From: Andalucia godoyi And28
Taxonomy: Eukaryota; Protista; Jakobida
Assembly: GCA_009859145.1 (NCBI GenBank)
Contig: VRVR01000001.1
Span: forward strand, 487,636-551,635
Direction of reading: 5' to 3'
Length of the DNA: 64,000 nt
The position numbers and the translations under genes were made by a program. The notes under the pieces were generated by a model, which did not search any database, was not told the DNA's origin, and saw nothing but the letters and a program-made list of their open reading frames with translations. The first letter of the stretch is position 1. The number at the start of each line of letters is the position of its first letter. This document shows positions 9,354 to 47,501 of the stretch, in pieces.

Positions 9354-9866
9354 TTTTCTTTCTTTTCTTAAAAAGAAACCAAAGAAAATAAATAGATAAA
9401 TAAATTAAAATAGTTCCATAAATTAAAAAAAGACTCTTCAATGCTGTGTGATTTGCTGGGTTTTGCAACAGATCAATACAGATGGTTGGTGAACGACTGC
9501 ATAGCGATGATTCTCCGTTGCGTTTTGTTTTTTCTGTGAGGGTAAATTCAGGTGGAGTCCAAGTCGGAGGGATATGTCCCCGATTTTAAAAATTCGGGAA
9601 CGGCAAAATATATCATAAAACAAAAATTAAAAGAAAACCGTTCTTTTGGGTTCCATTAGAATTCCGAATCCGGAACATGGTTTTGTGCTTTGTGCGCTGC
9701 TCACTTGCACTCTGAATGATTTCTTGTGTTGCCTTTTTCTTTTCCCTTTTGGATGGCTGATCTGTTCTTTTGGAGGGGGTTTGCGTTTTTTCCCCTTCTT
9801 TTTCGATTGGTTCCCAGAAGAATCAAAGAAAGAAGGAAAGAAAGAAAGAAAAAACAGAAGAGGGGA

Positions 9867-11171
9867 ATGGAGACAGAGCATATGCACACGCATTCGACGC
9901 TTGTTTCGTATACTGGAAACGGCCAAGATGCATCCTTTTTGCAATCGGCTCGGCTCGACGACTCTCGAGATGTGGACGTGTCGCACATGAATGCATCGTT
10001 GACAGCGTCCGACTCCGAGGCAAATGAGGCAAATCGCGAGGTCCAAGCGCGAGTCTCGGATCGGCGGAATCTCATTCTTAAGAAACTGAACAGAACGCTG
10101 TCGCTGCAGTTCAATGTCGCTGCGTTTGTGCGAAAGGGTGGTCTGGAAGAGCTTGCAAAGGCTCTTGAAGACCGCAACAAGATTGTCCGGATGCGTGCAT
10201 TGCAGCTCTTTGGAAAAGTTTGTCTGTGTTTTCCCCAGCATGTTGCGCAAGTGCTGCTTTCCGAGGCGCATATCCGGAGCTTTTTGGCGTGTGCAAACGA
10301 TTCTTCACGGAATGTTTCCTATGAGTTCTCGCTGTTGTTGCATATTCTGAGCAGAAATATCGATGGACGAGGCCTTCTGCTCAAGAGAAAGCAACAGGTC
10401 ATGGAGATTCTTGGAGGTGCCCATGGACTGAAGTCGCCTGATAAAGCCGTACGGTCTTCCATGCTTGCAGCCACGCAGGGCCTGATGCGCAGCGGTGACT
10501 GGAGAAATGTCATATCCGAGCAGAAGGGTCTCAAGGAGTCCATTGCGCTGATCCACGAAATGGAAATCCCGGAGCTCCACAGTGCATCTGGAGAGGTCGA
10601 CGCAGTACGAGCAGAAATGGTTTTGGAGACTGTGTGCCACGGAGACGAATCTGTGATTCACAAGCATCTCAAAGAAGCGGACACCCTTCTTTTGAACTCG
10701 GCTTCCAAACTGAGAGACGTCACGTCACCCGACTCTGCTGCGCATCCTCTTGCGAAGGCCCGAGCAAGGTCTTCCTCCAACGCATCAGGGACAGGATACG
10801 ATGGCGGGTCGCATTTCAAAAAATCGTCGAGGAATGTTGCTGTTCTGCGTGAAAAGGCATTGGCCCGAGAACGTTCTGAACAACAACAGCAGCAGCAACG
10901 AGTTGGTGCAAGCGACGATGAGGGCACGGAGGAAGAGATGATTGTGGACGACGACGAGGATCCTGCGTATGCCCCGTCTGATGTGGCGGATGATCCGCGA
11001 GGTGGTAAGAGCGAGGGGAAGGGCAGGGGAAGGGGCAGTGAAGCGATGTCGGCCGCTTCGAAGTCCAAAAAGAGAATGCTTCTGCCAGCTACATCTGCAA
11101 ACCGCGCGAGAAAACAAGGGCGGTACGGGTATTCCCCTGTGTCATACCCCTCAGATGACCAAAGCGAGTAG
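9867..11171 (+). CDS. ARM/HEAT-repeat protein with a disordered acidic C-terminus
   Basis: Helical repeats such as GGLEELAKALEDRNKIVRMRALQLF and LKSPDKAVRSSML. First plausible ATG at 9867. Confidence 0.65.
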   Translation: METEHMHTHSTLVSYTGNGQDASFLQSARLDDSRDVDVSHMNASLTASDSEANEANREVQARVSDRRNLILKKLNRTLSLQFNVAAFVRKGGLEELAKALEDRNKIVRMRALQLFGKVCLCFPQHVAQVLLSEAHIRSFLACANDSSRNVSYEFSLLLHILSRNIDGRGLLLKRKQQVMEILGGAHGLKSPDKAVRSSMLAATQGLMRSGDWRNVISEQKGLKESIALIHEMEIPELHSASGEVDAVRAEMVLETVCHGDESVIHKHLKEADTLLLNSASKLRDVTSPDSAAHPLAKARARSSSNASGTGYDGGSHFKKSSRNVAVLREKALARERSEQQQQQQRVGASDDEGTEEEMIVDDDEDPAYAPSDVADDPRGGKSEGKGRGRGSEAMSAASKSKKRMLLPATSANRARKQGRYGYSPVSYPSDDQSE

Positions 11172-11621
11172 GAGGAGGAGGAACGAATGTTTTATTTGTC
11201 TGTCCGTTTTGTTTCTGTTTTGCTTGTTTGCTTGCATTGTCTCAATCGATGTGGATGTCGGTCTGTATGATAAAGTGTCTACGCCTACTTTGTGTGCTTT
11301 AAGTACTTTGCGCACCAAACACACGCACACATGCCCAAAGCCGTCCGCGCTGCAGTTTCACGTGCCATTCCAAGACAGCTGTAGTGGGTAAATGAAAACC
11401 TTCCGCCATTTCTGACTGTCTCAGGGCAAAAATGCCCGCAGCCTTCTCCCCTCAAGCCCTGTTTGCGGTCATGCATGCCTTCTGACCAGATTTTTTGCGG
11501 TTTCAGCGCATTTTGGTCTCCTTCTTTGTTTCCAATGTTTCCGTTCGTTTTTCTTATTTTCCACCCTTTCCTTCTTCCCTGTTGTGCCAAACGAGAAAGA
11601 AAACAAACACACACACACATT

Positions 11622-13190
<1,569 letters not shown>

Positions 13191-18665: not shown

Positions 18666-21431
18666 ATGGCGGAAGCAGTAGCTGCAACTTCGGTTGTTGT
18701 CGATGTTTCTGATGCAGGTGCAGGTAAGCCGGTTGTGACTGCAGAGACAGGTCGCGAGTTTCTTCAGCGAATGAAGTCGGAGCATCCTGACGGGCTCTCT
18801 ACTGCCGAGGCACAGCAGCTTTTGGTTCAGTATGGACCAAATGCACTTCCCGAAAAGATCGTTCCTTTGTGGCGCCAGGTTATGAAGCATGCTTGGGGCC
18901 GTGAGGCGTGGCGTCCGGATCCGATTCCAGTGATGCTTTGGTTTGCCATGATCATTTCCCTTATTCTGGAGGACTGGCCCGACTTCGCAGTCATCTTTAT
19001 CTTGTATTTTGTGAATGCGTCACTTGCGTTCCACGAGGAACGCAAGGCTGGAAATGCAGTGTCGGCTCTCAAGTCTGCTCTTGCTCCCACGGCGACTGTC
19101 AAGCGTGATGGGAGGTTCGATGGAATCCAAGCGCGTGATTTGGTTCCGGGAGATATCATCAAAATGAAGATTGGAGATGTCGCAACCGCAGACTGCGTGC
19201 TTTTAGAAGGCGGCGAGTGCGCAATGGATCAGTCATCGCTGACTGGCGAGTCCATTCCGTCCAGTAAGAAGCCTGGTGATACATTGTACTCCGGAACGAC
19301 TCTGAAGCGTGGCGAGGTGTATGCGTACGTATGGAAGACTGGAGAAAATACAGAGTTTGGCAAGACGGCTTCGTTGATTGCGTCCGTCGAAAACCAGTCG
19401 CGATTCCTCAAGATCCTGAACGGAATTACAAACTTCATCTTGGCTGTTGCGCTGCTGGTCAACTTTGCATTGATTGCTGTGGATCTTGAGCGCTCTCAGA
19501 ACATTTTGATTGTCATCCAGCGCGCGCTCGTGCTGTTGGTTGCTGCCGTGCCCATCGCCACTCCTCTCGTGTGCACTGCTACCATGGCAATCGGCGCAAG
19601 GAAGCTTGCTGAAGAAAACGCAGTTGTCACGCGACTTGCAGCCATCGAAGAATTGTCATCCATGACCATTTTGTGCTCGGACAAAACTGGTACGTTGACC
19701 CTCAACAAGCTCCAGCTCGACGAACCGTGGCTGCTTCCTTTGGATCTCTCTGCTCCTGCTGCACCCAAGGCAGACACGTCATCCCCAGAGGACAATGTCG
19801 CCGCTCCTGAGGAACTAGTCCGACCGGGACATGTCTTCAGCAACAACGAACTCATCTTTGTTTCAGCACTTCCCACTGTTAGCGTCGATGCGGATGCCAT
19901 TGATACTGCTGTTCGAAACTGTGTAGTAAGCAACCCCAAGCTTGGACCGGAGTTTGCAAAATACGAGCAGACCGAATTCATTCCTTTTGATCCATCCAAC
20001 AGACGGACTACTGCCACGATCCGGGCACCAAATGGAACTGTTTTCCGCGTGTGCAAAGGTGCACCAAAGATGGTTCTTGCAATTTCAAAGAATGCAAATG
20101 CGGATGCTGCGATTCCCATCTTGGTGAAGAACAAGGAGAATGAGTATGCCGCCCGTGGTCTTCGTTGCTTGGGCGTTGCAATCGAATACGATGTGGCAGA
20201 GAAGACTGAGGGAAGCGAGGATGCAAAGAACTGGGTTTTCCTGGGCCTTATTGCGATGTTTGATCCTCCTCGAGTGGACACTGCGTCAGTCGTTTCTCGT
20301 GCTCACGAACTGGGAGTGGCTGTGAAGATGATTACTGGAGATGCACGTCCGATTGCGATCGAAACTGCTCGCCGTCTTGGCATGGGTCTCAACATCTTGC
20401 CTGCTGAGCATCTCCACGTGCCAAACGACACCAAGGAGCATGTCTATGATTTGTGCTTTAATGCTGATGGTTTTGCCGAGGTTTTCCCGGAAGACAAGTT
20501 CAACATTGTCGCCATTCTCCAGAAGGACGGATTGAACACCGTTGCCATGACTGGAGATGGTGTGAATGATGCTCCCGCGTTGAAGAAGGCCAATGTCGGC
20601 TTTGCAGTCAAGGGCGCCACTGCTGCAGCGCAGGGTGCTGCCGATGTCGTTTTGTTGAATGACGGTCTTTCGGTTATCATTGCCGCGATCATCCGCTCCC
20701 GCAAGGTGTTTGAGCGCATGAAGAACTACGCATTGTATCGTATCAATGTCTCTTTCTCGCTGCTGTTCTTCTTTTTCATCACCATTGTTTTCATGAATTT
20801 GTCGCTTCCTGCAATTGTGGTTGTGCTGCTGGCACTGATGTTAGACGCGGTGGTGCTCGGAATTTCAAAGGACTTTGTTCGCCCCGATGACATTCGCAAG
20901 CCTTGCTTCTGGGATTTGCCAGTTGTTCTGTCGGTTTCCGTTGCCATGGGTCTTCTGTCCGCTGCGCTGTCTGTTCTGGTTTTGATCATTTTCCGCCAGA
21001 AATACATACTCCCGTACTCTTACACGGATCTTGAGGTCATGTCCATTGCGTTTTTGCAGATTGCACTGCTGAATGAGATGGATGTTTTCATTGCTCGTTG
21101 CAGATATGCCTTCTTCACCAAGCGCCCCGGCAAAGCACTGACTGCTGGTTCGTTCGTCGGAATGATTGTTGTTACCCTTCTCGGTGTGTACTGGCCGTTT
21201 GGCTCTGGTATGGAGCCGGCTGGTTGGGCTGCGGCCGGCCTTGTTTGGGCATTGTGCATCATCTGCTGCATCATTCTGGACCTTGGAAAGTTGCTTGCAT
21301 ATGAAATTGTGTTTGGAGCGAGACACTATCACGAGGAGTCTCTCGATGACACCAAGAGATCGGTCCGCATGCGCATGTCGAAGCTCTACACTCCCAGTCC
21401 CATGTCTGCAGATACTGTTACCAAGATCTAA
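18666..21431 (+). CDS. PMA1: Plasma-membrane H+-ATPase (P-type IIIA)
   Basis: LTGES, CSDKTGTLT, KGAP, DPPR, MITGD and TGDGVNDAPALKKA motifs with multiple TM helices. Confidence 0.93.
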   Translation: MAEAVAATSVVVDVSDAGAGKPVVTAETGREFLQRMKSEHPDGLSTAEAQQLLVQYGPNALPEKIVPLWRQVMKHAWGREAWRPDPIPVMLWFAMIISLILEDWPDFAVIFILYFVNASLAFHEERKAGNAVSALKSALAPTATVKRDGRFDGIQARDLVPGDIIKMKIGDVATADCVLLEGGECAMDQSSLTGESIPSSKKPGDTLYSGTTLKRGEVYAYVWKTGENTEFGKTASLIASVENQSRFLKILNGITNFILAVALLVNFALIAVDLERSQNILIVIQRALVLLVAAVPIATPLVCTATMAIGARKLAEENAVVTRLAAIEELSSMTILCSDKTGTLTLNKLQLDEPWLLPLDLSAPAAPKADTSSPEDNVAAPEELVRPGHVFSNNELIFVSALPTVSVDADAIDTAVRNCVVSNPKLGPEFAKYEQTEFIPFDPSNRRTTATIRAPNGTVFRVCKGAPKMVLAISKNANADAAIPILVKNKENEYAARGLRCLGVAIEYDVAEKTEGSEDAKNWVFLGLIAMFDPPRVDTASVVSRAHELGVAVKMITGDARPIAIETARRLGMGLNILPAEHLHVPNDTKEHVYDLCFNADGFAEVFPEDKFNIVAILQKDGLNTVAMTGDGVNDAPALKKANVGFAVKGATAAAQGAADVVLLNDGLSVIIAAIIRSRKVFERMKNYALYRINVSFSLLFFFFITIVFMNLSLPAIVVVLLALMLDAVVLGISKDFVRPDDIRKPCFWDLPVVLSVSVAMGLLSAALSVLVLIIFRQKYILPYSYTDLEVMSIAFLQIALLNEMDVFIARCRYAFFTKRPGKALTAGSFVGMIVVTLLGVYWPFGSGMEPAGWAAAGLVWALCIICCIILDLGKLLAYEIVFGARHYHEESLDDTKRSVRMRMSKLYTPSPMSADTVTKI

Positions 21432-21748: not shown

Positions 21749-22432
21749 ATGAAGGCAAATTCTGTTCCTGTAGCGTCCGTTGTGCGCCGATTCAACAACC
21801 TGTTGCTATCAGCCGATGGCCGTGACAAGTTCTATCGTATTCTGCAGTATGTGTCACGTTTTCTTGGGGCAGCGCTTCCCAAGACGTCTCAGTATGCAGC
21901 TGCATTTCAGAGTCTTTCTACTGCGATGGCTGAAACACGGCGTGTTCTTCGTCTATTCCGGTTCTTGTCGGACGGTCTGCGGATTGTCGATTCTGTGCCG
22001 AAGCTGTTCGTCCCGGCTGCATCGAGTGGCAGCGACGGTGGGAGTGGTGGTGGCGATGGGAAAGGAGGAAAGCGCCGCGTGAAGCTTGACATGCCACTGC
22101 TGATCTCGCTCATTGGTGCGTTCTGTAATGGAATGTACATGCTAATCGAGTCGATCATGATTCTTGAAAAGGCGCGGTTCATCAAACTTAATGCAGCCGC
22201 CTGGAACCGTCTGGGAAACTTCTGCTGGTTTGCATCCGTGATCTCGGGGCTTCTCGTCGAGGCCATCAAACCATTAAAGGCAAAGTCTGTCCGTCAGATT
22301 GTGAAACTCATCTTCGACGCTCCAATCGCTTACAACCTCTCGTTCCCAGCCGGATTCTCTCTCAAACTCACAGGCGCTCTCGGAACAGTCTCTTCATGGT
22401 GCATGTTCCTCGATGTATGGGACAAGGCATAG
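21749..22432 (+). CDS. PEX11: Peroxisomal membrane protein PEX11
   Basis: DGRDKFYRILQY...AETRRVLRLFR N-terminal signature and C-terminal GALGTVSS TM segment. Confidence 0.88.
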   Translation: MKANSVPVASVVRRFNNLLLSADGRDKFYRILQYVSRFLGAALPKTSQYAAAFQSLSTAMAETRRVLRLFRFLSDGLRIVDSVPKLFVPAASSGSDGGSGGGDGKGGKRRVKLDMPLLISLIGAFCNGMYMLIESIMILEKARFIKLNAAAWNRLGNFCWFASVISGLLVEAIKPLKAKSVRQIVKLIFDAPIAYNLSFPAGFSLKLTGALGTVSSWCMFLDVWDKA

Positions 22433-23254
22433 CATCCCATGCCTACTCCAACCATCATTGCCCCAACAAAAATAAAAATAAAACACACAAGCTCGCTCAT
22501 ACCCTATCCCATTCCAAAATCCCCAGGTAAGTCGCCACGTCGTGAATGCCGGCTTGCAGGCTTTCCCATGTGTGTATGTGTATTACTATTACTACTACTT
22601 ATTGTTATTACTATTATGATTATGATTATAATTTTCTTTTCCATTTTTTTAAAATAAAATTTAAAAAAAAAAGGAAGAGAAACGAAGTAGGTGTGTGTTT
22701 TTGGTTTTCCTGATATAGATCCGCAAGACCCTTCCAATTCTCTGGAAATAATGCAAAAGCCATTAATGGAGAAAAAGAGGAAGCCTTTTCAAAAGAAGAA
22801 AAGAGCAGGTCTTGATGATCATCGTTGATCTAGGATGGTTATGACTCGAATACCTTCTCATTAGTAACCCAATCTCAGGTCATTACTGGCGTTTCTCTAC
22901 GAGAAAGAAAACACCAGCGAGAGGCAGTCTTAAGGACCATCCCAAAGAAGGGAGAAAAAGAGAAAAGAGAAAAGAGAAACAGAGAAACAGAGAAACAGAG
23001 AGAAAAGAGAAACAGAGAGAAAAGAGAAAGCGAGAAGAGCGACAATGAAATGAGAAAATGAGCATCAAGTGATGCCTCCTGCTGTAGATGAAAGATGCAG
23101 ACAGTAGCAATCCGATTTGAGATCGTTTTCATGACTTTCTTTCTTATGAAGATGATTCGAATGGTTTGTCAGCGACTTGGAAGACGTTTTAATTATATTT
23201 TCTAATTTTTTATGATTCAATTAACCAAGTTATTAACGAGGATAGTTTGAGGGG

Positions 23255-25174
23255 ATGGCGACGAGGCTGACTCCGCGATCAAAGTCTCCTGCGGTCGCAT
23301 CGTCTAAACCAAGTCCGAGCTCGTCAAAGCCAGTCCAATCTGCGCAGCCTGCTTCTTCAGTTTTGAAACAGTCTCCAAATTCGCACTCGGTAGCCTCGGC
23401 TGCTCCCGTAGCAACTCGCCCAAGGTCCAATTCTTCAGGAGGCCTTTCCACAAAGTCGACGGCCAAGCCAGCGACTCCAACGAAGGCTCCGTTCATTGCA
23501 ACTTCGAAACCACTCCCGACACATTCCACCGCTACCACTGCTACTGCCTCTGCGACTGCGACTGCGACTGCGACTGCAAAGGCAAGTGGGGATGTGGATG
23601 CTTCGTGGATATTCGTAATATCATCTTCGCGATACGAAGCATTTTCATCGCAATTGATGGGTCTTGTAACGAGAACTGGGTGCAGAGATGTCGAACTTGT
23701 GGATGTCGACCAGATGGTTTTCAACAAGTCGGGGCGGATTGTTCTGGAGAATGTGCCGATATGGAGCCATGTTCTGACAGACTCGTTTACGTTTGCAAGT
23801 GTGTTTATGAAGTCCCGACCGCTGATTCAAAACGTACGACGTGTTCATTTGATTGACGCGCAGTTTGGACCGATTGTGGACGCATATCACTTGATTTGCG
23901 AAAACGACACGCGGTTGCGAAAAGTCAGGGGACAGCTGATGGAGAAACAGGCCAAGGTCGAGACAGAAACCAGGAAGCGAATTTCCAAAGTCGTGGTTGA
24001 GAAGGTTGTCCAGGCGAAGAGAGCTGTGAGCAAAGAGATTTCGCGAGTCGTTTGCAATGAGCTGAAAGCGCTCAGCCTCAACAATCCCGTTCCGACGATA
24101 CGAAGCTTGTTTGTCGCAATCATGACTGTTCTGACTGGAAAACGTGGGCTCTCAAGTCTTGATCACCGATTTTCTCGGGCTTCTTTGGTTTCGATTGACG
24201 AATCCGCACTGCTGTCCAACTTGCGCCGAGCATTTCCGGATTTGTTCAAACCAACAGCCGCGGCAGAGTCGCTGTACATCCGGCTGCTGGGGTCCATGGA
24301 GCTTACTGGAGATCGAGTACTGCATGCAAATTATGCATGCGCTGTTCTCTATGACTGGGTTACCGCACTGATTGGATATGCGGAAGAAATCATACGAGAC
24401 GATGGTTTGCGAGCCACCGTCGAAGAATTCGAGCATGAAGCCGAAGTACTCGAGGAAGCCATGCCCGAGCAGGAGCGAATGGCCCTCATGATCGAAGACG
24501 TTAAAAGGCTGTCCATTTCAAGGACGTTCCACGAAGAAGCGCACGGAAAAGCTGTTTCCGAGTATGTGCTTGCACACGTGCTTTCTTGCGATCGGAAGCT
24601 AGATGCGATGCGAAAAAATCAAATCGGGAGGCAGTGGCAGCACAAAGTCTTCTCCAGCTTCAAGACGCTATCACAGCTGCGCATCGTTGTTCTTGGGGCA
24701 CAGGGTCATTTGGGAAAACATGTGTGCAACGCACTCTCTGCTCTGGGAGTCGGTTGTGGATCCGCAGGCGCCATGAAAACGTTTGGTGCAATATCGAAGG
24801 ACACCGATTTTGTGGTCAACTTGCTTCCGTGCACTCGTAGCTCTGTCGCGGATGCGAATGGGTCACTGGATTGTATCAAGGAGATGTTCCCGGAAAATGC
24901 AGCCTCGGACAGCCACAGACCCGTACTGATCAATGTTGGAGAGCTTCCGCTGTTCTCGCTGTGGCCAGACTATGTGTTTTCAAGCCGAGTCATTGACTGG
25001 TGCGATGTTCGGTCATTCGAGCTGGATTCGTCCGCAAAGTGGTGGAACGCTGCGGCGACAACGATTACCCCTCATTGTGCCTCTGCGGAGCCTACTGTTG
25101 AGCAGTTCATGGAGGTGTGGAATGGATTGGAGCACAATGATTCGCTCTTTCTTCAGTGGGACCGTGAATATTGA
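23255..25174 (+). CDS. GhrA-like D-2-hydroxyacid dehydrogenase fold with an inserted dynein-stalk-like (CC1-MTBD-CC2) module
   Basis: 2-HADH motifs AVSEYVLAHVL..DR, VLGAQGHLG, DFVVNLLPCT, VLINVG, ITPHCA and terminal WDREY. Insert motifs NELKAL..NPVPTIRSLFVAIMTVL and ANYACAVLYDWVTALIGY. Confidence 0.75.
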   Translation: MATRLTPRSKSPAVASSKPSPSSSKPVQSAQPASSVLKQSPNSHSVASAAPVATRPRSNSSGGLSTKSTAKPATPTKAPFIATSKPLPTHSTATTATASATATATATAKASGDVDASWIFVISSSRYEAFSSQLMGLVTRTGCRDVELVDVDQMVFNKSGRIVLENVPIWSHVLTDSFTFASVFMKSRPLIQNVRRVHLIDAQFGPIVDAYHLICENDTRLRKVRGQLMEKQAKVETETRKRISKVVVEKVVQAKRAVSKEISRVVCNELKALSLNNPVPTIRSLFVAIMTVLTGKRGLSSLDHRFSRASLVSIDESALLSNLRRAFPDLFKPTAAAESLYIRLLGSMELTGDRVLHANYACAVLYDWVTALIGYAEEIIRDDGLRATVEEFEHEAEVLEEAMPEQERMALMIEDVKRLSISRTFHEEAHGKAVSEYVLAHVLSCDRKLDAMRKNQIGRQWQHKVFSSFKTLSQLRIVVLGAQGHLGKHVCNALSALGVGCGSAGAMKTFGAISKDTDFVVNLLPCTRSSVADANGSLDCIKEMFPENAASDSHRPVLINVGELPLFSLWPDYVFSSRVIDWCDVRSFELDSSAKWWNAAATTITPHCASAEPTVEQFMEVWNGLEHNDSLFLQWDREY

Positions 25175-25303
25175 AAAGGCAGCACATCTTGCTCCTGGGC
25201 GCACGTTGTATTTTCAAAAATAAATGTAAATAATAATAATAATAATAATAATGGTATTCATATAGTACACAGTCAATCTTCACTGCCCAAGTTCAAATAA
25301 ATT

Positions 25304-28300
25304 TCATTCCGACGGCGCACTCTCTGAAACGTCCGAGTCCGAGAAAGCAGGACTCTGCAGCAGTTCAGCCGGAACCGGAAGCGCGAAAGACTTGGTTGGC
25401 GAAACGAAATGGCCTGGAGAATGGGGCCCCTGAAGGCGACAAATGTATTCGACAGCAAACTCACATGACGCAAAGAAATACTCCTGCTCGCCGTTAAAGT
25501 GAAACTGTCTACTTGAAAAGCGGCGAATGAACTCCACTTGTGAAACCATGTTTGCAACATCGCAGCCGGCGACAACTCGAATAAATATGGGCAAAAAGTC
25601 GTCAGAGGCCGCAATATGACCCGGAAGGGCCACATCCATGGAGGTGAATGCTTCCCGAGCAGCTTCCACGATACACGCCAGCTTTCCGGAAGGAGTAGCA
25701 AGAACATTGCCCGTTGACTGATCAGCAGATCCTTCATACAAAGAAAGCGACAGTTGATTGAGCTTTTCGATGGACTTGCTCAAATCCAAGTCGCATTCGT
25801 CGTAGAGGCCCAGTGGCTCTTCTTTCGCCCACTGTTGATGCAGCCGGAATTTTTCATCGTCCACACTGCGATCCGCGAGGAACCACAAGGAGTCAATCAC
25901 CTTTGAAGTAATAAGCCACTCAACAAGAGAGTAAACTTCTGCCTTTGAAAGCCCTGAGAGTGCCTTTTCATGTTGCTGCAAGGCCCAGTCGGAAAACTCT
26001 TCAATGAAATCAGGAACCATGATGGACGGGTCCTCGACAGCAACAGCAGGCGCATCCGCGGTGGAGCTGCGCCATTCTGAATTTCGATCAAACGCTGCTC
26101 CACGAAACGGGCTAACAAGGCCCATTTCAACAATCTCTGGCGCACCGTTTCCGGCTTCGGAGTCGAGAATTTCTACCACAGAGGCATCCAAACTCATTTC
26201 ATCCGATTTCGTCGCCGAAACGGTGCCATAATGAGGAATTACCTCTTCGGCGACATCCGACGGGCTCAGGAAGCCGTGCAGAGAATCAAACGACGATTCC
26301 AATATATACTCGGGCAACATTTCGACTACAATCTCTCCGCACAGTGCGGGCTTCGACAATCCAAACGCAGTCTGAATAGATTTGCGATACTTGCGAATGG
26401 GTTCGACGTCCCGAGAAAATTTGACAACAAAACTGGAAATGTGTCGGTGTTCTTGCGAAGCAGGATCCAAACATCGCTTCTCCAGCCAGAGCTTGACAAA
26501 TTGCAACCGCTCCTTCTCGAGCGCAAAGACAAACGACCCGTCATCCGTAGTCACGGTCTCGCCGTTGACCATCATCAACTGTCCCGATTTGATTGTCGTC
26601 GATCGATTTCGCAACTTGTGGAAGTCTTCCTTGGAGCAGCTACGTTGGTCTGCACGCATAGCCGGAGAGGCTCCTTGAATCGAGCTTCCACTGGACCCAA
26701 ACGAAGAGCTGGTCGCGGTAGAGGCCCTCCCCATCAGCTGCGCCGACATCTTGGCATAGTAGAGAGAAAATCGGTCCAATCGGCCAACTTGTTCGTGGAT
26801 GGAATGCGACAGCGATGCCAATGACAAGACCATCGTGTCCTTTGAAAATGACTCGATGAAATGAAGCCCCCAAGAGACAGCGGACAGCACTCGCGGATTT
26901 GCCGCGCTCTCATCGTTCTCTCGCAGAATCGAACACGGATCCTTGGAATCCAGAAAGTACAAATCAGCATCCACGGACAACTCCACGGAGCTGACGAGCT
27001 CGATTGCCAGCTCAAGCAATGAAGCATACTTCTTGTCGTATTGAAGTTCCAGATCTGCGCGAAGCCCACGTCGAACTTCAGAAAACGTCACCGCCTTCCC
27101 TCCAGAGTCCCTAAACGCCTCTGATTCCTGATCTTCCAGCAGCGCCTCTACGAAATGCGTGTTGGCGCAATTGCCTGCAGCCACAGACGCAGAAGACGCA
27201 ACACTCGGTGGCCGATCGAGATCCGACACCTTTTTTGACGATGATCGTTTACGCGGCAGCTGTGATTCTCTTTTGATGCCGCGATCATCAATAGACAGCT
27301 TGGCAGAAATCCGTTCCCACACAGCCCGTCTCAACTCGCCCAATTTTTCTTTCAAAGCCGTGTAGAAGGATTGAATTGTGTTGACGTGGTTCTGGACATG
27401 AATTTTCTTTTGCACCTGCAGCTGTCCCAGCATCAGCTGCATCGGAGCCAACCGGGGGTCTTTCAAGAGCACTCTACTTACAAAAGACTTTCGAAGCAGC
27501 TTTCTTGTAATACCGCGCAGGGGCGGTCCTGCAAAACATTGCAGCAGCTCATCCATAATCTCGGATTCCTGGATGAAACGGTCCCGCGTATGCTCCAATG
27601 TCCGGACATTGCTGCAGATCTGTGTTTCGAGTTGGATGTATTCATCATCGACTGCTTTTAGCTTGCCATACCACTCGTCCAGGAACATGAAAATGTCAGA
27701 AGAAAACGACGTGTAGTGTGGCATGGGCTGCGAAAAGGACTCCCGGGAGACGGAGGGCTTCATCAGCTTCGAAGCGACGGGAAGTCGCTCGACAGATACT
27801 AATCCACCCTGGTTCAATACATACTCCCTCATTATGGCTGTTTGGAGTGTAACAATCTGCGATTCGAGCATGTGGGATGCGTGCGCCGCAAACGACGGAT
27901 CCTTCTCTTCCGCCTGGATTTGGCTCAGTCGCAGCTTTGCCTGCAGCATATCTTTCAAAACTCCATCTTCTGCCGGTACTCGTGACAATGCATGTAGCAA
28001 TACGAACCGCGACTCTTGTGAATCTGCCTGCAGTGACAAGAAATGGTCCATTTCAAACTCGAACTGCGCGTAGCCACCGGCACCATTGCACAACGTTCGA
28101 AATGGAGGCGATGAAGCCGATGTAGAGGCCGTGGACGAAGAATTCAGATGGTCGTCCAGGTCAAGACACGATGCTGACAGTAATCCCAGCGACGGGAGCT
28201 GCTGGACGCCAGCCGATGGCGAAGGTGAGCACAGATCCAGCGCAAAGAGCCCCGATGACAGAGCATATCCCTCTCGGTCAAACACGAGCGACTGCCGTCG

Positions 28301-28618
28301 CATTGCATCCGATGCATGCTTCACAGCAGAGTACCATTCCTGTGCAGACTGCGAATCCAGTGCTTTGAAATCGAAATTGCGGCTCGGAGTCTCGATTCGC
28401 AGCGTTTGTTTTTCGGAAATGTACACAATTTTGCAATCGGTAGTGTTGAGATAGAACACTCGTGTAGGCTTCGATGCTGTCTTGGAATGATACTTTTCAA
28501 GCCGCGAAGGGTACAAGCGGAACCATCGTGGAGAAGGCTTTGATGCGTAAGCCTTTATCAATGTTCCTTCTTTTATAAGAAACTCTTGGTCCACGGACCA
28601 TGATCGCTTCCGTCCCAT
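25304..28618 (-). CDS. PH-domain and VPS9-domain Rab5-family GEF
   Basis: N-terminal PH domain (IKEGTLIK...RWFRL...FDFKA..SAQEWYSAV) and C-terminal VPS9 (PSGKLACI, ASDDFLPIFIRVV, GEQEYFF). First plausible ATG at 28618. Confidence 0.8.
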   Translation of the reverse strand: MGRKRSWSVDQEFLIKEGTLIKAYASKPSPRWFRLYPSRLEKYHSKTASKPTRVFYLNTTDCKIVYISEKQTLRIETPSRNFDFKALDSQSAQEWYSAVKHASDAMRRQSLVFDREGYALSSGLFALDLCSPSPSAGVQQLPSLGLLSASCLDLDDHLNSSSTASTSASSPPFRTLCNGAGGYAQFEFEMDHFLSLQADSQESRFVLLHALSRVPAEDGVLKDMLQAKLRLSQIQAEEKDPSFAAHASHMLESQIVTLQTAIMREYVLNQGGLVSVERLPVASKLMKPSVSRESFSQPMPHYTSFSSDIFMFLDEWYGKLKAVDDEYIQLETQICSNVRTLEHTRDRFIQESEIMDELLQCFAGPPLRGITRKLLRKSFVSRVLLKDPRLAPMQLMLGQLQVQKKIHVQNHVNTIQSFYTALKEKLGELRRAVWERISAKLSIDDRGIKRESQLPRKRSSSKKVSDLDRPPSVASSASVAAGNCANTHFVEALLEDQESEAFRDSGGKAVTFSEVRRGLRADLELQYDKKYASLLELAIELVSSVELSVDADLYFLDSKDPCSILRENDESAANPRVLSAVSWGLHFIESFSKDTMVLSLASLSHSIHEQVGRLDRFSLYYAKMSAQLMGRASTATSSSFGSSGSSIQGASPAMRADQRSCSKEDFHKLRNRSTTIKSGQLMMVNGETVTTDDGSFVFALEKERLQFVKLWLEKRCLDPASQEHRHISSFVVKFSRDVEPIRKYRKSIQTAFGLSKPALCGEIVVEMLPEYILESSFDSLHGFLSPSDVAEEVIPHYGTVSATKSDEMSLDASVVEILDSEAGNGAPEIVEMGLVSPFRGAAFDRNSEWRSSTADAPAVAVEDPSIMVPDFIEEFSDWALQQHEKALSGLSKAEVYSLVEWLITSKVIDSLWFLADRSVDDEKFRLHQQWAKEEPLGLYDECDLDLSKSIEKLNQLSLSLYEGSADQSTGNVLATPSGKLACIVEAAREAFTSMDVALPGHIAASDDFLPIFIRVVAGCDVANMVSQVEFIRRFSSRQFHFNGEQEYFFASCEFAVEYICRLQGPHSPGHFVSPTKSFALPVPAELLQSPAFSDSDVSESAPSE

Positions 28619-29192
28619 TCCAATATGAAGAAATCCTATCCTCTTTTTATTCCCTCTTCTCTTCTCTTCTCTTCTCTTTTCTTCTCTTCTCTTTTCTTTT
28701 CTTCTTCCTCCTTCTTTTCTTTCCCTAAGCCGCACCTGCTCCTTCTGGTCACCAATATAGTATTGCTATTACTGAAGTAGGAAAAGAGAAAAGGAAAAAG
28801 AGAAACAGAAAAATACTGATTTCCCTGCAAATCAAAAACTGAAATCACCGTAAAATAACAATAATTATAATAAAGCAACCATGATTTGATGCACAGAAAC
28901 TTGAGGTCCATTGGAAGTGGACGTGAGGCTGCATTTGTGTTTTCAGCATTATTTTTTTTTGGTATATTTTTCTACAGTAGTCAGACGGCGGTTGTCGGGC
29001 ATTTTCTGTTTCTCTCCGCAACTGTACAGCTAGCCAAGTCGTTGCGACCTTCTTCTCCTTTTGTATTAATATCTCGGATTTATTATTATTATTATTGTTA
29101 TTATTTCATTTTATGGTTGTCTTTTTATTACTCTCAATCTACGAAAAGGAGGAGACGGGTTCGTTCGAGGTGGAGGGGAGGAAAGAAAAAGA

Positions 29193-32765: not shown

Positions 32766-35700
32766 CTATTTCCTGCGTTGTGCAAGAGACGCTCGCATCG
32801 CCAGAACTTGGGACCGAAGAGCCTCCCGCTTGCGCCGGCGGATTTCAGCGTCCTCCAAAACAGATGCCGGCGATGTTGAACGTGGCGGTGACGCACTCGC
32901 ACCTCTATCCTGAATACTCGCGGGTTGTTCTCGAGGAGGAGAAACAGCGGTTCGGGGTATCTGTCGATTGTGTGGCTCTGCGGTCGTGGGCGTCTTCGAA
33001 GACGATGCAACAGAAGACTGTCTCGTGGTACTCGTAGCCATTGCTGTCGACGACGATTTTCCCGGCGCTGGTACCGAGGTCGCAAGCGCACTGGTGACAG
33101 CTTGAGATGGGCTCGAGGTCATGGGAGATGCACGGGATGCTGGAGGCTGCATCACAGATCGCGAAGTTGGAGGCTGCACTGTCGACTTCGGCAGATCCCG
33201 AAAAGGAGATGTGCTGCGATTTCGTGCCGCTGACTGTGCGCGACTGGTGGCTTCCGCGCCCCTCGATGGCTTACTAGACTTTTGTCCGTGCTTCGGCGGA
33301 GAAGCATTGGCAACACCATTGCTGTTGACCGTCGTCGATATCGCTGTTGTGGTGGACATAGACGTGGCCGCCGCCTCGGCAGCACTGCGCAACGCTCGGA
33401 GATACGGTCCGTAAAGTGCTTCCAGATATGCTTTGAGCATAACCGACCTCTTCTTTTCGCCTGTTTTCTCATTGGATGGAATGTCCACGACCAACGCACC
33501 GTTATTGGAGAGCCGAATAGACACGACTTGATCCAACTGGTACACTCCCGATTCGAGGCGGCGAACATCAACTTTGAATGGCCATTTCAGTTCACGCAAG
33601 AATGCACACACAGAGACATCCACGGGATCTCGTGGATCATCTGTCACATACTCCAACGCACCTGCATGAGAAGACTTGATCTGGTCAAGAATTCCAAGTA
33701 CTTGTCGCCGGGTCTGCTTCAGAGACTGGTCATCCAATAAGTCATTCGAGCGCTCAATGCGAGATCGGAGAGACTGGACAAGGTTTTGATACGCCACAAG
33801 ATCCTCTTCAAAAATACGCCGTCGTTTTTCCATTTCCTCATCTTTCTTCCGCAGGAGTGCTCGAAGAAGCCCGTTTTCCTCTTCTAGGATGTGCTCAACT
33901 GTCATCCACAGCCCATGCGAGACGGGACTGGATGTCGCACCGGATGATTGCTTGGGCATCGTGCGTGCATGGTCATCTGTCGAAGCTCGATCAGGATGCT
34001 CGTTCGACGGCTGGCCGCCTCCGACAACCGTAGAATTCACAGACAGCTTCATGTCTTCCAATGCTTGTTGCGTGTGCAGGAGCTGCATGGACAGAGCCTG
34101 CACAAGCTGTTGCGCTCGGCTGTTTTTGATGTTCCACGACTGCAAGGCATTCCCAAATGCAGAGTGAAGTTTCTGGAAGATGTCAATGTTCAAACAGCCC
34201 ATGAGCATTTGAACGTCTTGCTGCAGCGCCTGAATGGCCTTCTTCATTGGAACGATACGGTTCACGTACTCGTTCGAGAGAAAAGACCGCAATAACATAA
34301 AGTCGTTCTTTTGCTTTGCATGCTCCTGCGCGATCTTGGCCAAATCCGACTGGTACTGCATAACTTCTTCATGGAACTTTTCCATCATATCCAAATACTC
34401 GTCACGCTCCGACATCAGAGCTGCATTCGTCAACTCCAATTCAGCAATTCGAGACAAGTTCCCGTCATTCTCGCGCCGGAGTCCGGAATAGCGGTCCTCA
34501 TGCTCCCCCAGTCTTCGAGAAATCTCGGAGAATTTGGACTGCTGCGAAGACAGATCGAACTGCAGTTTTCGATTTTCGATCTCCAGGGTTCGTACCTTGG
34601 ATTCCAGTTGAACAACTTTCTGGGGCGTACTGATTCCAACGCTGGGTGACGATGGCCGTGCACTCCCGGATGTTGCGGAATCCAGGTTCGAGACATACGA
34701 ATCTCCTTCCACAAAGGCCGAAGCACTTCGCGCGCGCGTAGGACCTTGTGAAGATGGCGTTTCCCTATTCCTGGCGTCTTCCGCTGAAGAGTGAGAGCTT
34801 TGAGAGACGGTAGCCGAAGAGGCGCTTGAAGAGGTACCATTGGAGTATGCCAAAGATGGTTCTGTATGAGTTGATTTGAATGGGGCCAGCGGAGTCGCTG
34901 TTGCATTTGGTCGTGGAGCTGCGCTTTCGGATCGATTTTCTACCGGGAAAGATTTGAAAGTCGCTTGGGATCCGGTGGATGCCGCAGGAACCGCCGTGGA
35001 AGAATACGTAGAAGAAGTCGAGGGCTTGTTAAAATTGGAAGCTGCGGCAATGGATGCGGGCTCAGACAATTTTGGTGGTGACCGTGCTCCCACTAGAGAT
35101 GCATGCGTTGATGACCGTTCCAGCACGCTAGGAGAAGTGGATTCGACTTTGGATCGATTCAGAGAGGCTGAACTGGCGGATCGATCGATTGGTCTGCGTT
35201 CTCTCGCCGGCGACTCCTCGATTGATACATTCGAGGAATTGCTGGAATTTGTCGGCAATGACTTCTGGTACTGGGATGTATACTTTGCAATAATCGCTTC
35301 GTAATCGACGTTGTCGCTTGATACGGAGGAAGTGCTTCGATTGACAGATGCATCCTCGGGGGCGGGTCCGGCATTGTGAGTGGCCGCAGCAGAAGCAGCA
35401 GGAGCAGCAGATGCAGCAGGAACAACTGCTGTTGACGACGAGGAGGTGCTTGCGGTTGTGGTAGAATTGGAAGACGAGGAAGCAGAAATACTTGCCGAGC
35501 TTGCCGGTTTCGGAGCTTCATTCGGGGGTCTGTTTGACGGAAGGGGGGCAGCAGAAGATGGTTGATAGGACGTTGAAGGAGGCGGTTGTGGCTTTTCCTT
35601 GACTGCTTCTCTTTCTGAGCCTCCAGGAACTTCGATCGGCTCAAGTATCCTAAATCCGAACTGAATGAGTATTTCGCGGTCAACATCGGACAGCGACCGG

Positions 35701-35945
35701 ACAAAATCTCTCCAGCTTTTGCATTGATCTGCCCGTCTGAGAAATTCATCGAAGTCTGCAACAATTTCCAGCGTTTGCACATGCGCCAGGACCAATTCTT
35801 CATCAACGGCACTTTCGGCTTCCGTCTTGGGTTTGTCCGAAGTCCGGTTCGGCGACAGCAAATCCTCCAAGCTCTTGGCTTCGTCTCGCAACGTGTCGCG
35901 CAATTGAAGCAAAGACTCTCTGGTAAAGGACTTTTTGTCGTTCAT
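32766..35945 (-). CDS. Large Ser/Pro-rich coiled-coil protein with a GAS2/GAR-like domain
   Basis: Central coiled coil, then DPVDVSVCAFL...VRRLESGVYQL...VVSIRL...LKAYLEALY, resembling GAS2. First ATG at 35945. Confidence 0.7.
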   Translation of the reverse strand: MNDKKSFTRESLLQLRDTLRDEAKSLEDLLSPNRTSDKPKTEAESAVDEELVLAHVQTLEIVADFDEFLRRADQCKSWRDFVRSLSDVDREILIQFGFRILEPIEVPGGSEREAVKEKPQPPPSTSYQPSSAAPLPSNRPPNEAPKPASSASISASSSSNSTTTASTSSSSTAVVPAASAAPAASAAATHNAGPAPEDASVNRSTSSVSSDNVDYEAIIAKYTSQYQKSLPTNSSNSSNVSIEESPARERRPIDRSASSASLNRSKVESTSPSVLERSSTHASLVGARSPPKLSEPASIAAASNFNKPSTSSTYSSTAVPAASTGSQATFKSFPVENRSESAAPRPNATATPLAPFKSTHTEPSLAYSNGTSSSASSATVSQSSHSSAEDARNRETPSSQGPTRARSASAFVEGDSYVSNLDSATSGSARPSSPSVGISTPQKVVQLESKVRTLEIENRKLQFDLSSQQSKFSEISRRLGEHEDRYSGLRRENDGNLSRIAELELTNAALMSERDEYLDMMEKFHEEVMQYQSDLAKIAQEHAKQKNDFMLLRSFLSNEYVNRIVPMKKAIQALQQDVQMLMGCLNIDIFQKLHSAFGNALQSWNIKNSRAQQLVQALSMQLLHTQQALEDMKLSVNSTVVGGGQPSNEHPDRASTDDHARTMPKQSSGATSSPVSHGLWMTVEHILEEENGLLRALLRKKDEEMEKRRRIFEEDLVAYQNLVQSLRSRIERSNDLLDDQSLKQTRRQVLGILDQIKSSHAGALEYVTDDPRDPVDVSVCAFLRELKWPFKVDVRRLESGVYQLDQVVSIRLSNNGALVVDIPSNEKTGEKKRSVMLKAYLEALYGPYLRALRSAAEAAATSMSTTTAISTTVNSNGVANASPPKHGQKSSKPSRGAEATSRAQSAARNRSTSPFRDLPKSTVQPPTSRSVMQPPASRASPMTSSPSQAVTSALATSVPAPGKSSSTAMATSTTRQSSVASSSKTPTTAEPHNRQIPRTAVSPPREQPASIQDRGASASPPRSTSPASVLEDAEIRRRKREALRSQVLAMRASLAQRRK

Positions 35946-36486
35946 TCCAACACGCACACGGCCCACTCAGGCACTCTAAATTCAGAGCAACCCCTCAGAA
36001 TGCACAAAGAAAACAACAACAACAGCAAATTAAAAAAATTAAAAAAAATTAAAAAACCGCGAGAAAATGGAAACAAAACCAAACGCACAAAAAAGCCTCC
36101 TTTTCAGATTGCTGCAGCCTCGGAATCACCGAATGTTCAGCCCCTTGATAATGTCTGACGCACCAAAATGAATGAAAACAAACCAGCAATGAAACAAGAA
36201 GCAGTAACAGAGTGAGTGTCGTTCAGTGCAGCGCACTCGGGAAATCGGAACGTTGGCTTCTTTGGCACTTCGATTTGCCCTAATGCAAAAACAAAAGGGG
36301 GAAAAAAAATAAGGGAATGGATGCCCGCAAAGGATCGACATCCCATTCGACTACAGTCAGCAGTCGAGATGCGTCTCTGGGGGGTTGCGAGCCTTGTCCC
36401 GAATCCCCGCAAGGCTGCCGCAACTTGCGGGTTGCTCTGGGTATTTCGGAATCGTCGCGAAGCATCTGGCTCTCTGCAAGGTTTGT

Positions 36487-44471: not shown

Positions 44472-45097
44472 TCGGCTGAGCTGTCATCGGACTGTCATCG
44501 AAGACAGATCCAAGCCACATGTTTTTATTGTTTTTATGAATTTGGGGCGAACACCAACTCTTCAATGCAGGTTGCTGGTCATCGCAACCAACACATTCCC
44601 CAATGGAGTCAGCATCCAGAAAAATGAATGTTGGAGGAAACAGAATGTGTTCGGCGGTGGGACACATTGCGCCTGACGACGCTTTTGCCTTTGCCTCTTC
44701 TTGTTCTCAGACTTGAAAAAAGGCGCATTCCGAACGCAATCGATCACATCTCCGTGATTTAACATATCTTGTTCTTCGCCTCGGACGAGAGGGGGATCAA
44801 CGGGTTTTCTTGGTTCTCGGCATCTTCGGACATGGCCAATTTGGGTTTTCTGGGGAAGATCCCTCCTTGGAGCCATGCAATGCTTTGTCTTTGATGAACG
44901 GTGCTGCTTAAGAGTTCGATCGATAAAAAGCAAACACACAGAAAATAGTACAAGGGAGAATAAAAGTGAAGAATGATAAGGAGTCCTGAGCTTGACTACG
45001 GTAAGAACGTCGCGTCCCCACAGGGTTGGACAAGCAAACTTCCGGTATGATGTTGTTTGCTTGAGGTTCAATGTTGAAACACAAAGCGGTCAACCGT
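44472..45097. repeat. Dispersed repeat copy A (626 bp)
   Basis: Near-identical to 62231-62628 apart from indels. Confidence 0.92.
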
Positions 45098-45113
45098 GTT
45101 TTTCGTGTCGTGT

Positions 45114-45158
45114 TCAGTTCCGTCAGTTCCGTCAGTTCCGTCAGTTCCGTCAGTTCCG
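45114..45158 (+). repeat. (TCAGTTCCG)5 tandem repeat in the dynactin leader
   Basis: Five perfect 9-mers ending 60 nt before the ATG at 45219. Confidence 0.95.
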
Positions 45159-45218
45159 TCAACAGTATTATTGTTTGACGCGGCCGTGGCGGGAGAGAAA
45201 CAGGTATCGAGACGAGAA

Positions 45219-47094: not shown

Positions 47095-47134
<40 letters not shown>

Positions 47135-47501
47135 GGTCGCTACGTCGAAGACAAAGGTTGTGCATGCCGCCAGCGGAACTTCGGAAGAGGCTCAGATTGT
47201 CATCGATTCTCTGAAGAGCTCGCTCGCTTATTACAAGGATCTGCTTGAGCAGACGCGGTCATCCCTTGTCAAATTCCGCGGCTCATGGATTGCAGATCCT
47301 CTGACGAAGACGGTGCCAACAAACGGTGCCGTGGAAAAAGACCGCGTTATCCGGAAGCATGCGGACAGTCTTGTTCGCACCAGGCTGCTGAAACAACGCA
47401 TTTTACCTGCTGTTCCTTTTGAACATTCCAGGGACTCGGCCGTTTCCTGGATGAATGCCTCTCACGAGATATTTTCGTCCTCCAATCCAGTCCGCACATG
47501 A
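45219..47501 (+). CDS. DCTN1: Dynactin p150 (CAP-Gly plus coiled coil), shortened
   Basis: CAP-Gly (FAGVEL...G.SYF.C...GLFV) and a p150-like coiled coil (LLEQVDSLSNAQKLVENLSEKVLQLE...ELEE). Confidence 0.8.

Follow-up and report, generated by a model that had tools for sequence, protein, structure and literature searches.

By sequence comparison, a 639-residue protein of the jakobid Andalucia godoyi And28 carries a stalk and microtubule-binding domain (MTBD) of the cytoplasmic dynein-1 type, inserted as a hairpin in a GhrA-like dehydrogenase. The gene lies at 23255..25174 (+) of the window, by which we mean the whole 64,000-nucleotide stretch of contig VRVR01000001.1 (assembly GCA_009859145.1, positions 487,636 to 551,635, forward strand) that was analyzed here. 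As judged from profiles and alignments, the same architecture, with conserved geometry and a basic N-terminal tail, is present in several eukaryotes. We consider it fairly probable that the Andalucia gene product associates with microtubules without being a motor and that a dimeric pseudo-dehydrogenase serves as its scaffold.

Results

Domain organization of the Andalucia protein

The gene is a single open reading frame (ORF), intact and uninterrupted, of 639 codons and a stop, which starts at the first ATG past a stop codon. The ORF listing gives it as complete and single-exon, and an identical protein is recorded for the same assembly and contig (GCA_009859145.1, VRVR01000001.1). A first-pass annotation of the window had described a GhrA-type dehydrogenase interrupted by a dynein-like stalk, and every motif that it quoted was found, in the stated order. 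The dehydrogenase motifs are NVRRVHLIDAQ (residue 193), SISRT (420), AVSEYVLAHVL (433), VLGAQGHLG (479), DFVVNLLPCT (518), LINVGEL (558), DVRSFE (584), ITPHCA (604) and WDREY (635). Those of the insert are AKRAV (254), NELKAL (268), NNPVPTIRSLFVAIMTVLTG (276) and ANYACAVLYDWVTALIGYAEE (358). Mapping against homologs and an insert-less relative upheld the presence of the insert and moved its bounds from the approximate 212-415 given earlier to residues 210-419, a length of 210 residues (nucleotides 23882-24511).

Six segments can be delineated along the protein. A predicted disordered tail, recognized by its composition, occupies residues 1-118 (23255..23608, +). Next comes the N-terminal part of the substrate-binding (catalytic) domain of the dehydrogenase (residues 119-209; 23609..23881, +), delineated by AlphaFold 2 (AF2) and alignment and ending in ...RRVHLIDAQFGPIVD; strands and helices alternate here in the AF2 model, and the segment aligns with the W(V/L)(H/Q)ST.AGV(E/D)G of the homologs and of the insert-less protein P0026. 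The insert follows, beginning with the ascending helix of the stalk, or first coiled-coil arm (CC1), at residues 210-252 (43 residues; 23882..24010, +), which is placed by alignment and AF2. It leads into the putative dynein-type MTBD (residues 253-384; 24011..24406, +), whose helices match H1, H2, H4, H5 and H6 of dynein in alignments with the PDB entries 5ayh and 3wuq, with the family profile described below and with mouse dynein-1. The descending helix, or second arm (CC2), covers residues 385-419 (35 residues; 24407..24511, +); it is placed by alignment, AF2 and periodicity, and its 3.5-residue hydrophobic periodicity is significant (z=4.1, p=0.005). The rest of the dehydrogenase (residues 420-639; 24512..25171, +) was assigned by a sub-threshold Pfam match, PDB entries 3hg7 and 8hpg, AF2 and Foldseek. 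It comprises the hinge strand SISRT and the NAD(P)-binding domain with GAQGHLG (residues 482-488), LINVGEL, R586/E589, H607 and a GhrA-like C-terminus, WDREY.

Searches initiated with the Andalucia protein gave a Pfam score of 19.2 bits for 2-Hacid_dh_C against a cutoff of 25.1. No AAA+ or other dynein heavy chain Pfam domain was found in the 639 residues, and the sequence flanking the insert is that of a dehydrogenase. A phmmer search of the PDB returned D-2-hydroxyacid dehydrogenases over residues ~430-616 (E=3e-4 to 5e-2, with 3hg7 at E=3e-4) and the dynein stalk/MTBD constructs 5ayh and 3wuq over residues 243-427 (E~0.08-0.1). When the insert was searched alone, nine of ten PDB matches were dynein stalk/MTBD chains, collinear from CC1 through H1...H6 to CC2. 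At the level of this single protein, the resemblance to dynein is suggestive and lies below significance.

A structure prediction by AF2 from the single sequence was unusable, with a predicted local distance difference test score (pLDDT) of 37, and the model used here was obtained with the family alignment (mean pLDDT 69.8, predicted template modeling score 0.60). Values exceed 90 in the NAD domain (residues ~439-499). Two long helical stretches, one continuous (residues 205-270) and one that includes the CC2 helix (residues 352-418, with CC2 at 383-418), are paired around a helical bundle. The best Foldseek matches of the model are GhrA-type glyoxylate/hydroxypyruvate reductases (4xcv, 4weq/5unn and 6ovl/7jqh; E~1e-8, probability 1.00), the matches listed being dominated by the dehydrogenase part of the model. 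Among NCBIfam models, GhrA and a haloarchaeal D-2-hydroxyacid dehydrogenase rank first, far under their equivalog cutoffs; for the GhrA equivalog NF012013 (cutoff 403 bits) the scores are 15.3 bits for the Andalucia protein and 120 and 133 bits for the homologs P0012 and P0027. The GhrA-type fold proposed at first pass is confirmed as a GhrA-like scaffold by Foldseek and by the NCBIfam ranking, while true orthology to GhrA is rejected by the NCBIfam cutoffs.

A family of proteins with the same architecture

An exhaustive phmmer (HMMER) search over 1.84 billion representatives identified 25 matches. Most of them are ordinary dehydrogenases of ~310-350 residues that match the C-terminal half only. 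In five longer proteins, the match extends over the insert as well as the dehydrogenase: P0006 (646 residues), P0007 (695), P0012 (863), P0014 (550) and P0027 (701). Each is a single uninterrupted ORF, and they lie on independent contigs from different samples. The closest relative, P0004, is a 128-residue fragment with 39% identity to the Andalucia protein. Its ORF is cut off by the end of the contig (L003:1-2162), and downstream of it, as in the window (24800-28735), lies a VPS9 gene in convergent orientation; this shared gene order identifies P0004 as a truncated syntenic ortholog from an uncultured relative of Andalucia (IMG 3300042934). All homologs come from metagenomes or Sequence Read Archive assemblies and bear generic, automatic names. 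The 93-kb contig of P0012 is eukaryotic and places its gene beside those for a P4-flippase, a mu subunit of an AP complex and a CHASE histidine kinase. The latter (L002:1-1727) is a CHASE-HisKA-HATPase-receiver hybrid kinase that may help to place the host taxonomically.

Word-indexed homolog searches returned the query alone, be it with the complete protein, with its tail removed or with the family alignment. Similarly, no further members were found in two metagenome-contig scans, one with the family alignment and one with the Andalucia protein, or in a prokaryotic-genome scan with P0012. The family is real: it comprises at least six full-length proteins and one syntenic fragment, and occurs in at least five uncultured eukaryotes besides Andalucia. 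The architecture reported by the first-pass annotation therefore stands. The protein is not a one-off, given at least six full-length members, two of them with a complete set of catalytic motifs.

The insertion itself is most clearly seen when P0012 is compared with the insert-less GhrA-like P0026. The two proteins align on both sides of the insert with 39% identity (E=3e-58); the alignment stops at ...AGV(E/D)G(L/F)(V/L) and resumes at F(V/I)L(S/T)R..., from where it continues through the ...RGY C-terminus. These breakpoints indicate that ~205 residues replace a surface loop of ~10 residues in the substrate-binding domain. The insertion point immediately precedes the strand leading to the inter-domain hinge, and the two arms of the stalk are rooted in the same domain (flanks: ...GPIVD and SISRT...). 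CC1 measures 43-46 residues and CC2 33-37 in all six members, despite pairwise identities of 18-40% and an overall identity of only 20-40%. The whole insert has 205-210 residues, except in P0007 (IMG 3300072015), where it has 243. The greater length of the latter is explained by an extra Cys-rich loop of ~25-35 residues (AYAHVDVCNMISAELRLPCMSCPSRAGNAS...) between H2 and H3. Some axonemal dyneins carry a "flap" between the same two helices.

The recurrence of this geometry bears on the reality of the gene. Since the exact protein is on record only once, we considered whether the ORF might be chimeric through mis-assembly, might result from a mis-joined gene model or might be a pseudogene in decay. 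Against this, the architecture recurs in a syntenic fragment and in five further single, uninterrupted ORFs, whose contigs are independent and come from different samples, the insertion boundaries are identical across members, and the Andalucia frame runs for 1.9 kb without stops in a genome whose genes are mostly intronless (PMC7050145). Recurrence, the synteny of P0004 and the intact frame rule out a chimera of assembly or annotation as well as a pseudogene, and we regard an artifact of any of these kinds as extremely improbable.

Relationship of the insert to dynein stalks

Homologs of the Andalucia protein match the Pfam model of the dynein stalk directly. Against PF12777 ("MT", cutoff 24 bits), P0006 scores 37.4, P0014 36.5 and P0012 24.9 bits, and these three proteins pass the gathering thresholds for PF02826 (2-Hacid_dh_C) and PF12777 alike. 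Their PF02826 scores are 81.5 bits for P0006, 53.1 for P0014 and 172 for P0012; P0012 and P0027 together span 158-172 bits. A family profile, which covers the N-domain, the insert and the start of the NAD domain, matched the stalk/MTBD of mouse cytoplasmic dynein-1 in the PDB with E=1.3e-39 (139 bits). A control profile, constructed from four homologs with the Andalucia protein left out, gave nearly the same result for the dynein-1 stalk/MTBD (E=1.9e-39), and it aligned collinearly to residues 192-475 of the Andalucia protein (54 bits, conditional E=5.5e-19). Because the control profile matches both dynein-1 and the Andalucia protein, homology between the insert and the dynein stalk is established transitively. 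The earlier claim of a dynein-like CC1-MTBD-CC2 insert in a dehydrogenase is borne out by Pfam on the homologs, by the family profiles and by the clean insertion alignment.

The profiles also discriminate among dynein classes. The family profile scores 125-139 bits with dynein-1, ~92 bits with dynein-2 and at most 87 bits with axonemal dyneins, and on these scores the captured module is of the cytoplasmic dynein-1 type. A specifically axonemal origin of the insert, which the profile disfavors by ~50 bits relative to cytoplasmic dynein-1, is rejected. The axonemal role suggested at first pass finds no specific support, the insert being nearer to dynein-1 (139 bits) than to axonemal dyneins.

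Properties of the N-terminal tail

The tail of the Andalucia protein has a pI of 11.6 and a net charge of +11; Ser, Thr, Pro and Ala make up 67% of its residues, it contains five [ST]P motifs, and Glu is absent. The tails of all members are low-complexity, Ser/Thr/Pro-rich and contain [ST]P motifs. Strongly basic tails (pI 11.5-12), equivalent to that of the Andalucia protein, are present in P0006, P0007, P0012 and P0014, that is, in five of six members in total, and the Ser/Pro-rich basic tail noted at first pass has turned out to be a conserved feature of the family. Part of the Andalucia tail, a (Thr-Ala)n run, is encoded by a hexanucleotide repeat, (ACTGCG)x6.8, detected with Tandem Repeats Finder at 23537..23577 (+). 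Length polymorphism is likely at this repeat.

Loss of catalytic residues in the enzyme module

Members of the family differ greatly in the state of the dehydrogenase. P0012 and P0027 keep the glycine-rich loop GxGxxG, which the insert-less P0026 also has, the substrate-binding Arg (GRGD), the catalytic Glu and the His. P0006 keeps GxGxxG, Glu and His, and has Glu in place of the substrate Arg. In P0014, which also retains GxGxxG, Arg is replaced by Glu, the catalytic Glu by Gln and the His by Asn. P0007 has a degenerate glycine loop (GEQSETG), Asp for the substrate Arg, a lost catalytic Glu (a His is aligned there) and Gln for the His. In the Andalucia protein, the loop carries a one-residue insertion (GAQGHLG), the substrate Arg is Glu563, the catalytic Glu is ambiguous and His607 is kept. 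The one-residue loop insertion is shared with P0007, as is the loss of two prolines at the ends of the MTBD (see below), and the NVGEL motif around Glu563 is shared with P0004. The segment past the second strand of the Andalucia NAD domain is shortened. In all, the catalytic residues are intact in two of the six members, and at least one has been lost in the other four, Andalucia included.

These data correct the first-pass annotation in one respect. Its statement that the substrate Arg is replaced (GRG to GEL) is confirmed, and of the two catalytic residues said to be retained, the His is indeed present; the supposed Glu equivalent is not confirmed, as Arg586 aligns with this position and Glu589 lies three residues downstream. 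With the substrate Arg lost, the glycine loop altered, the Glu ambiguous and the NAD domain shortened, the Andalucia protein is very probably catalytically dead and its ability to bind a cofactor is doubtful. The pseudo-enzyme status proposed earlier is in this way supported as probable by the lost Arg and the disrupted loop.

The alternative that the Andalucia protein is an active reductase of the glyoxylate/hydroxypyruvate type, simply anchored on microtubules to localize metabolism in space, draws on P0012 and P0027, in which all catalytic and cofactor motifs and high PF02826 scores (158-172 bits) are preserved, and on the closest structures, which are those of active GhrA reductases. It conflicts with the altered features of this protein (Arg to Glu, Arg586 at the Glu position, the modified glycine loop, a sub-threshold PF02826 score) and with the loss of catalytic residues in four of the six members. 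We consider it very unlikely. Across the family, as far as conserved residues can tell, catalysis has decayed repeatedly while the architecture and geometry of the stalk have persisted. This pattern indicates that the selected function appears to reside in the combination of scaffold and stalk.

Candidate role in microtubule binding

2-Hydroxyacid dehydrogenases are obligate dimers that associate via their NAD domains. In a dimer of this kind, two MTBD-tipped stalks and two basic Ser/Pro-rich tails would be displayed. Each stalk is predicted to be an antiparallel coiled-coil hairpin of ~6 heptads, tipped by the MTBD and seated near the inter-domain hinge. Being bivalent in this way, the protein would be suited to bind the microtubule lattice or to bundle, crosslink or anchor microtubules, and the [ST]P motifs of its tail could permit regulation by proline-directed kinases. 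The loss of the substrate Arg and the disruption of the Gly-rich loop suggest that the enzyme module of the Andalucia protein most likely acts as a structural dimerization scaffold rather than as a catalyst. The limited length of the hairpin need not be an obstacle: engineered fusions of seryl-tRNA synthetase with the MTBD (SRS-MTBD), whose stalks have 3 or 12 heptads, decorate microtubules (PMC6629372), and binding at 3 heptads indicates that short stalks are compatible with microtubule binding.

To compare residues of the MTBD, the family was aligned with the mouse dynein-1 segment. The family MTBD keeps the Lys of H1 equivalent to K3299, the prolines of H2, the Trp of H3, the NFD motif, the H6 motif RA..ACG.L..W...L.YAE and the prolines at both junctions with the stalk. 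In the cryo-EM structure, K3299 of dynein-1 adjoins D427 of beta-tubulin (PMC6629372). Of these, the Andalucia MTBD has retained the Pro of H2 and the greater part of H6 (HANYACAVLYDWVTALIGYAE), including the pattern A..AC..L..W..Y. By these comparisons, the Andalucia copy is the most degenerate member of the family in both modules, with P0007 in a similar state.

Several observations weigh against a microtubule-binding role of the Andalucia protein. The K3299 position is Cys, while it is Lys in all five other full-length members, and the H3 Trp is replaced by His. The prolines at the CC1/MTBD and MTBD/CC2 junctions are Gln and Gly, respectively (Ser and Ser in P0007; Pro and Pro in P0006, P0014, P0012 and P0027). 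The protein is the most divergent member, with the longest branch and an insert identity of 18-22%, and it gives no match to PF12777 in Pfam by itself. Heptad periodicity was tested for CC1 and is not significant. In the AF2 model, the MTBD core reaches a pLDDT of only 33-64 and lacks H3, the other helices being collinear with CC1+H1, H2, H4, H5, H6 and CC2. Finally, dimerization is assumed from the enzyme family.

The same observations would suit a hairpin that no longer binds microtubules. It might then be a degenerate relic with a different or reduced role, for example as a spacer or protein-interaction module, or the tail alone might bind. The lost Lys, junction prolines and H3 Trp, all of which are kept in the four best-conserved members, point in this direction, as do the longest branch in the family, the low AF2 confidence in the MTBD core and the missing PF12777 match. 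On the other hand, the ORF is intact, and the arm lengths of the family and the core motifs of H2 and H6 are kept. The ortholog P0004 from another organism shares the derived NVGEL, which suggests that a lineage-specific form is maintained, and P0007 is similarly degenerate yet intact. A relic is possible but, on balance, rather doubtful, and a non-motor microtubule-associated protein on a pseudo-dehydrogenase dimer is the reading that we prefer.

The position of the stalk raises the question of whether the dehydrogenase could control it. The first-pass annotation had pictured a metabolite-gated tether, in which NAD(P)H closes the dehydrogenase domains, shifts the register of CC1 against CC2 and switches the affinity of the MTBD. 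In dynein, affinity is indeed set by the CC1/CC2 register, and H1 and CC1 move together (PMC6629372); in the present family the stalk leaves the substrate-binding domain right beside the inter-domain hinge. P0012 and P0027, with GxGxxG, GRGD and the catalytic Glu and His in place, probably still bind a cofactor. There is also a precedent for a sensor of this fold, in that CtBP, a 2-hydroxyacid-dehydrogenase-fold protein, is able to act as an NAD(H) sensor. Gating is opposed by the one-residue insertion in the Andalucia glycine loop, by the shortened NAD-domain segment and by the change of the substrate Arg to Glu. Furthermore, both arms are rooted in one domain, so that hinge closure would not necessarily shift the arms relative to each other. 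For the Andalucia copy, gating is unlikely on these grounds, and the mechanism as such seems decidedly improbable to us. A version restricted to proteins of the P0012 type, where a ligand-responsive enzyme instead of an AAA+ ring would set the stalk register and NAD(P)H or substrate would switch microtubule affinity, the Andalucia copy being locked in one state, is improbable as well. If such switching did take place, it would couple redox or metabolic state to cytoskeletal crosslinking.

Genomic context

The long, dense and uninterrupted ORFs of the window fit the A. godoyi draft genome, which is compact and has mostly intronless genes (PMC7050145). According to a Pfam scan of the window proteins, the neighbors of the fusion gene are ordinary eukaryotic genes: those for a P-type ATPase (18666-21431) and PEX11 (21749-22432) on one side, and a gene for a PH-VPS9 protein (25304-28735, -), convergent to the fusion gene, on the other. 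The window encodes a second, distinct VPS9-domain protein of the Rab5 guanine nucleotide exchange factor type, a RasGAP-VPS9 protein (58842-61910, -) with a GAPVD1-like architecture. The gene pair is flanked by intergenic microsatellites, a purine-rich one (AAAAGAG / GAGAAACA) at 22948-23039 and a CTCTT repeat at 28654-28722. The CTCTT repeat falls within a GTG-started extension of the VPS9 ORF (MRLRERKEGGRRKEKRREEK...), which suggests that this extension is probably 5' untranslated region and that the real start is probably the downstream Met (MGRKRSW...).

A CAP-Gly domain (PF01302, E=6e-15) is situated at the N-terminus of an 801-residue protein encoded at 45096-47501 (+). This protein is a second candidate microtubule binder, 20 kb away; proximity in a eukaryotic genome implies no functional link. 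At 11463-13190 (+), a 575-residue protein shows a strong full-length match (E=3.5e-95) to PF10142, "PhoPQ-activated pathogenicity-related protein", a family found mostly in bacteria. This makes the gene a possible candidate for lateral transfer in a jakobid. Two large ORFs have no Pfam match at E<=1e-5: 32766-35966 (-), with 1066 residues, and 9726-11171 (+), with 481 residues.

Discussion

To our knowledge, the dynein stalk/MTBD has so far been found only inside dynein heavy chains. Searches of the open-access literature yielded no account of a dynein MTBD fused to a dehydrogenase or otherwise located outside a dynein heavy chain, and neither the gene nor the protein is mentioned in the genome paper of A. 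godoyi or in its supplements (PMC7050145). Within this literature, the assertion of the first-pass annotation that no protein of this architecture has been described holds. Both component domains are well known, and it is the architecture, and the family that shares it, that are apparently undescribed.

If the module otherwise occurs only in dynein, its capture by an unrelated dimeric enzyme is striking, and the family shows that the module works, or is at least retained, with no AAA+ motor attached. These natural proteins are small (~550-860 residues) and could be used to study microtubule binding that depends on stalk register. In poorly studied protists, they would also form a new class of candidates for microtubule-associated proteins. 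In addition, the graded loss of catalytic residues across the members provides a series for the change from enzyme to structural scaffold.

Comparison with known systems helps to define what is specific to the family. The dynein stalk/MTBD itself (PF12777; PDB 3wuq, 5ayh and 3err) has the same collinear order of CC1, H1-H6 and CC2; the H2 Pro and the A..ACG.L..W of H6 are common to dynein and the family, and the junction prolines are present in four of six members. Unlike dynein, the family has no AAA+ ring, linker, buttress or tail, and its module sits within a dehydrogenase loop. Of the stalk, which measures roughly 100 + 100 residues in dynein, the family has only the distal ~45 + ~35, and the Andalucia copy is devoid of several hallmark residues.

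On the enzyme side, the GhrA-type reductases (PF02826; PDB 4xcv, 4weq, 6ovl and 5mh5) share the two-domain fold and the ...RGY-type C-terminus and are the best sequence and structure matches of the family, which differs from them in its 205-243-residue insertion in the substrate-binding domain and in its long basic N-terminal tail. The use of this superfamily outside metabolism is not without parallel. CtBP/BARS is a non-metabolic, NAD(H)-dependent scaffold whose action depends on dimerization; in contrast to the proteins described here, it has no cytoskeletal module and its NAD(H) site is intact. CtBP1 appears among the Foldseek matches at ranks 40 and 49, and no specific relationship to the family was found.

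The nearest analog of the whole arrangement is engineered. In the SRS-MTBD chimeras (3err, 3j1t), structures of which are among the top PDB matches of the family profile, a dynein MTBD is carried on a short antiparallel coiled coil by an unrelated dimeric enzyme and binds microtubules with stalks of 3-12 heptads. These chimeras are man-made, have the native SRS coiled coil as their base and are fixed in register, whereas the Andalucia protein and its homologs represent a natural graft of the same module in a loop of a Rossmann-type enzyme.

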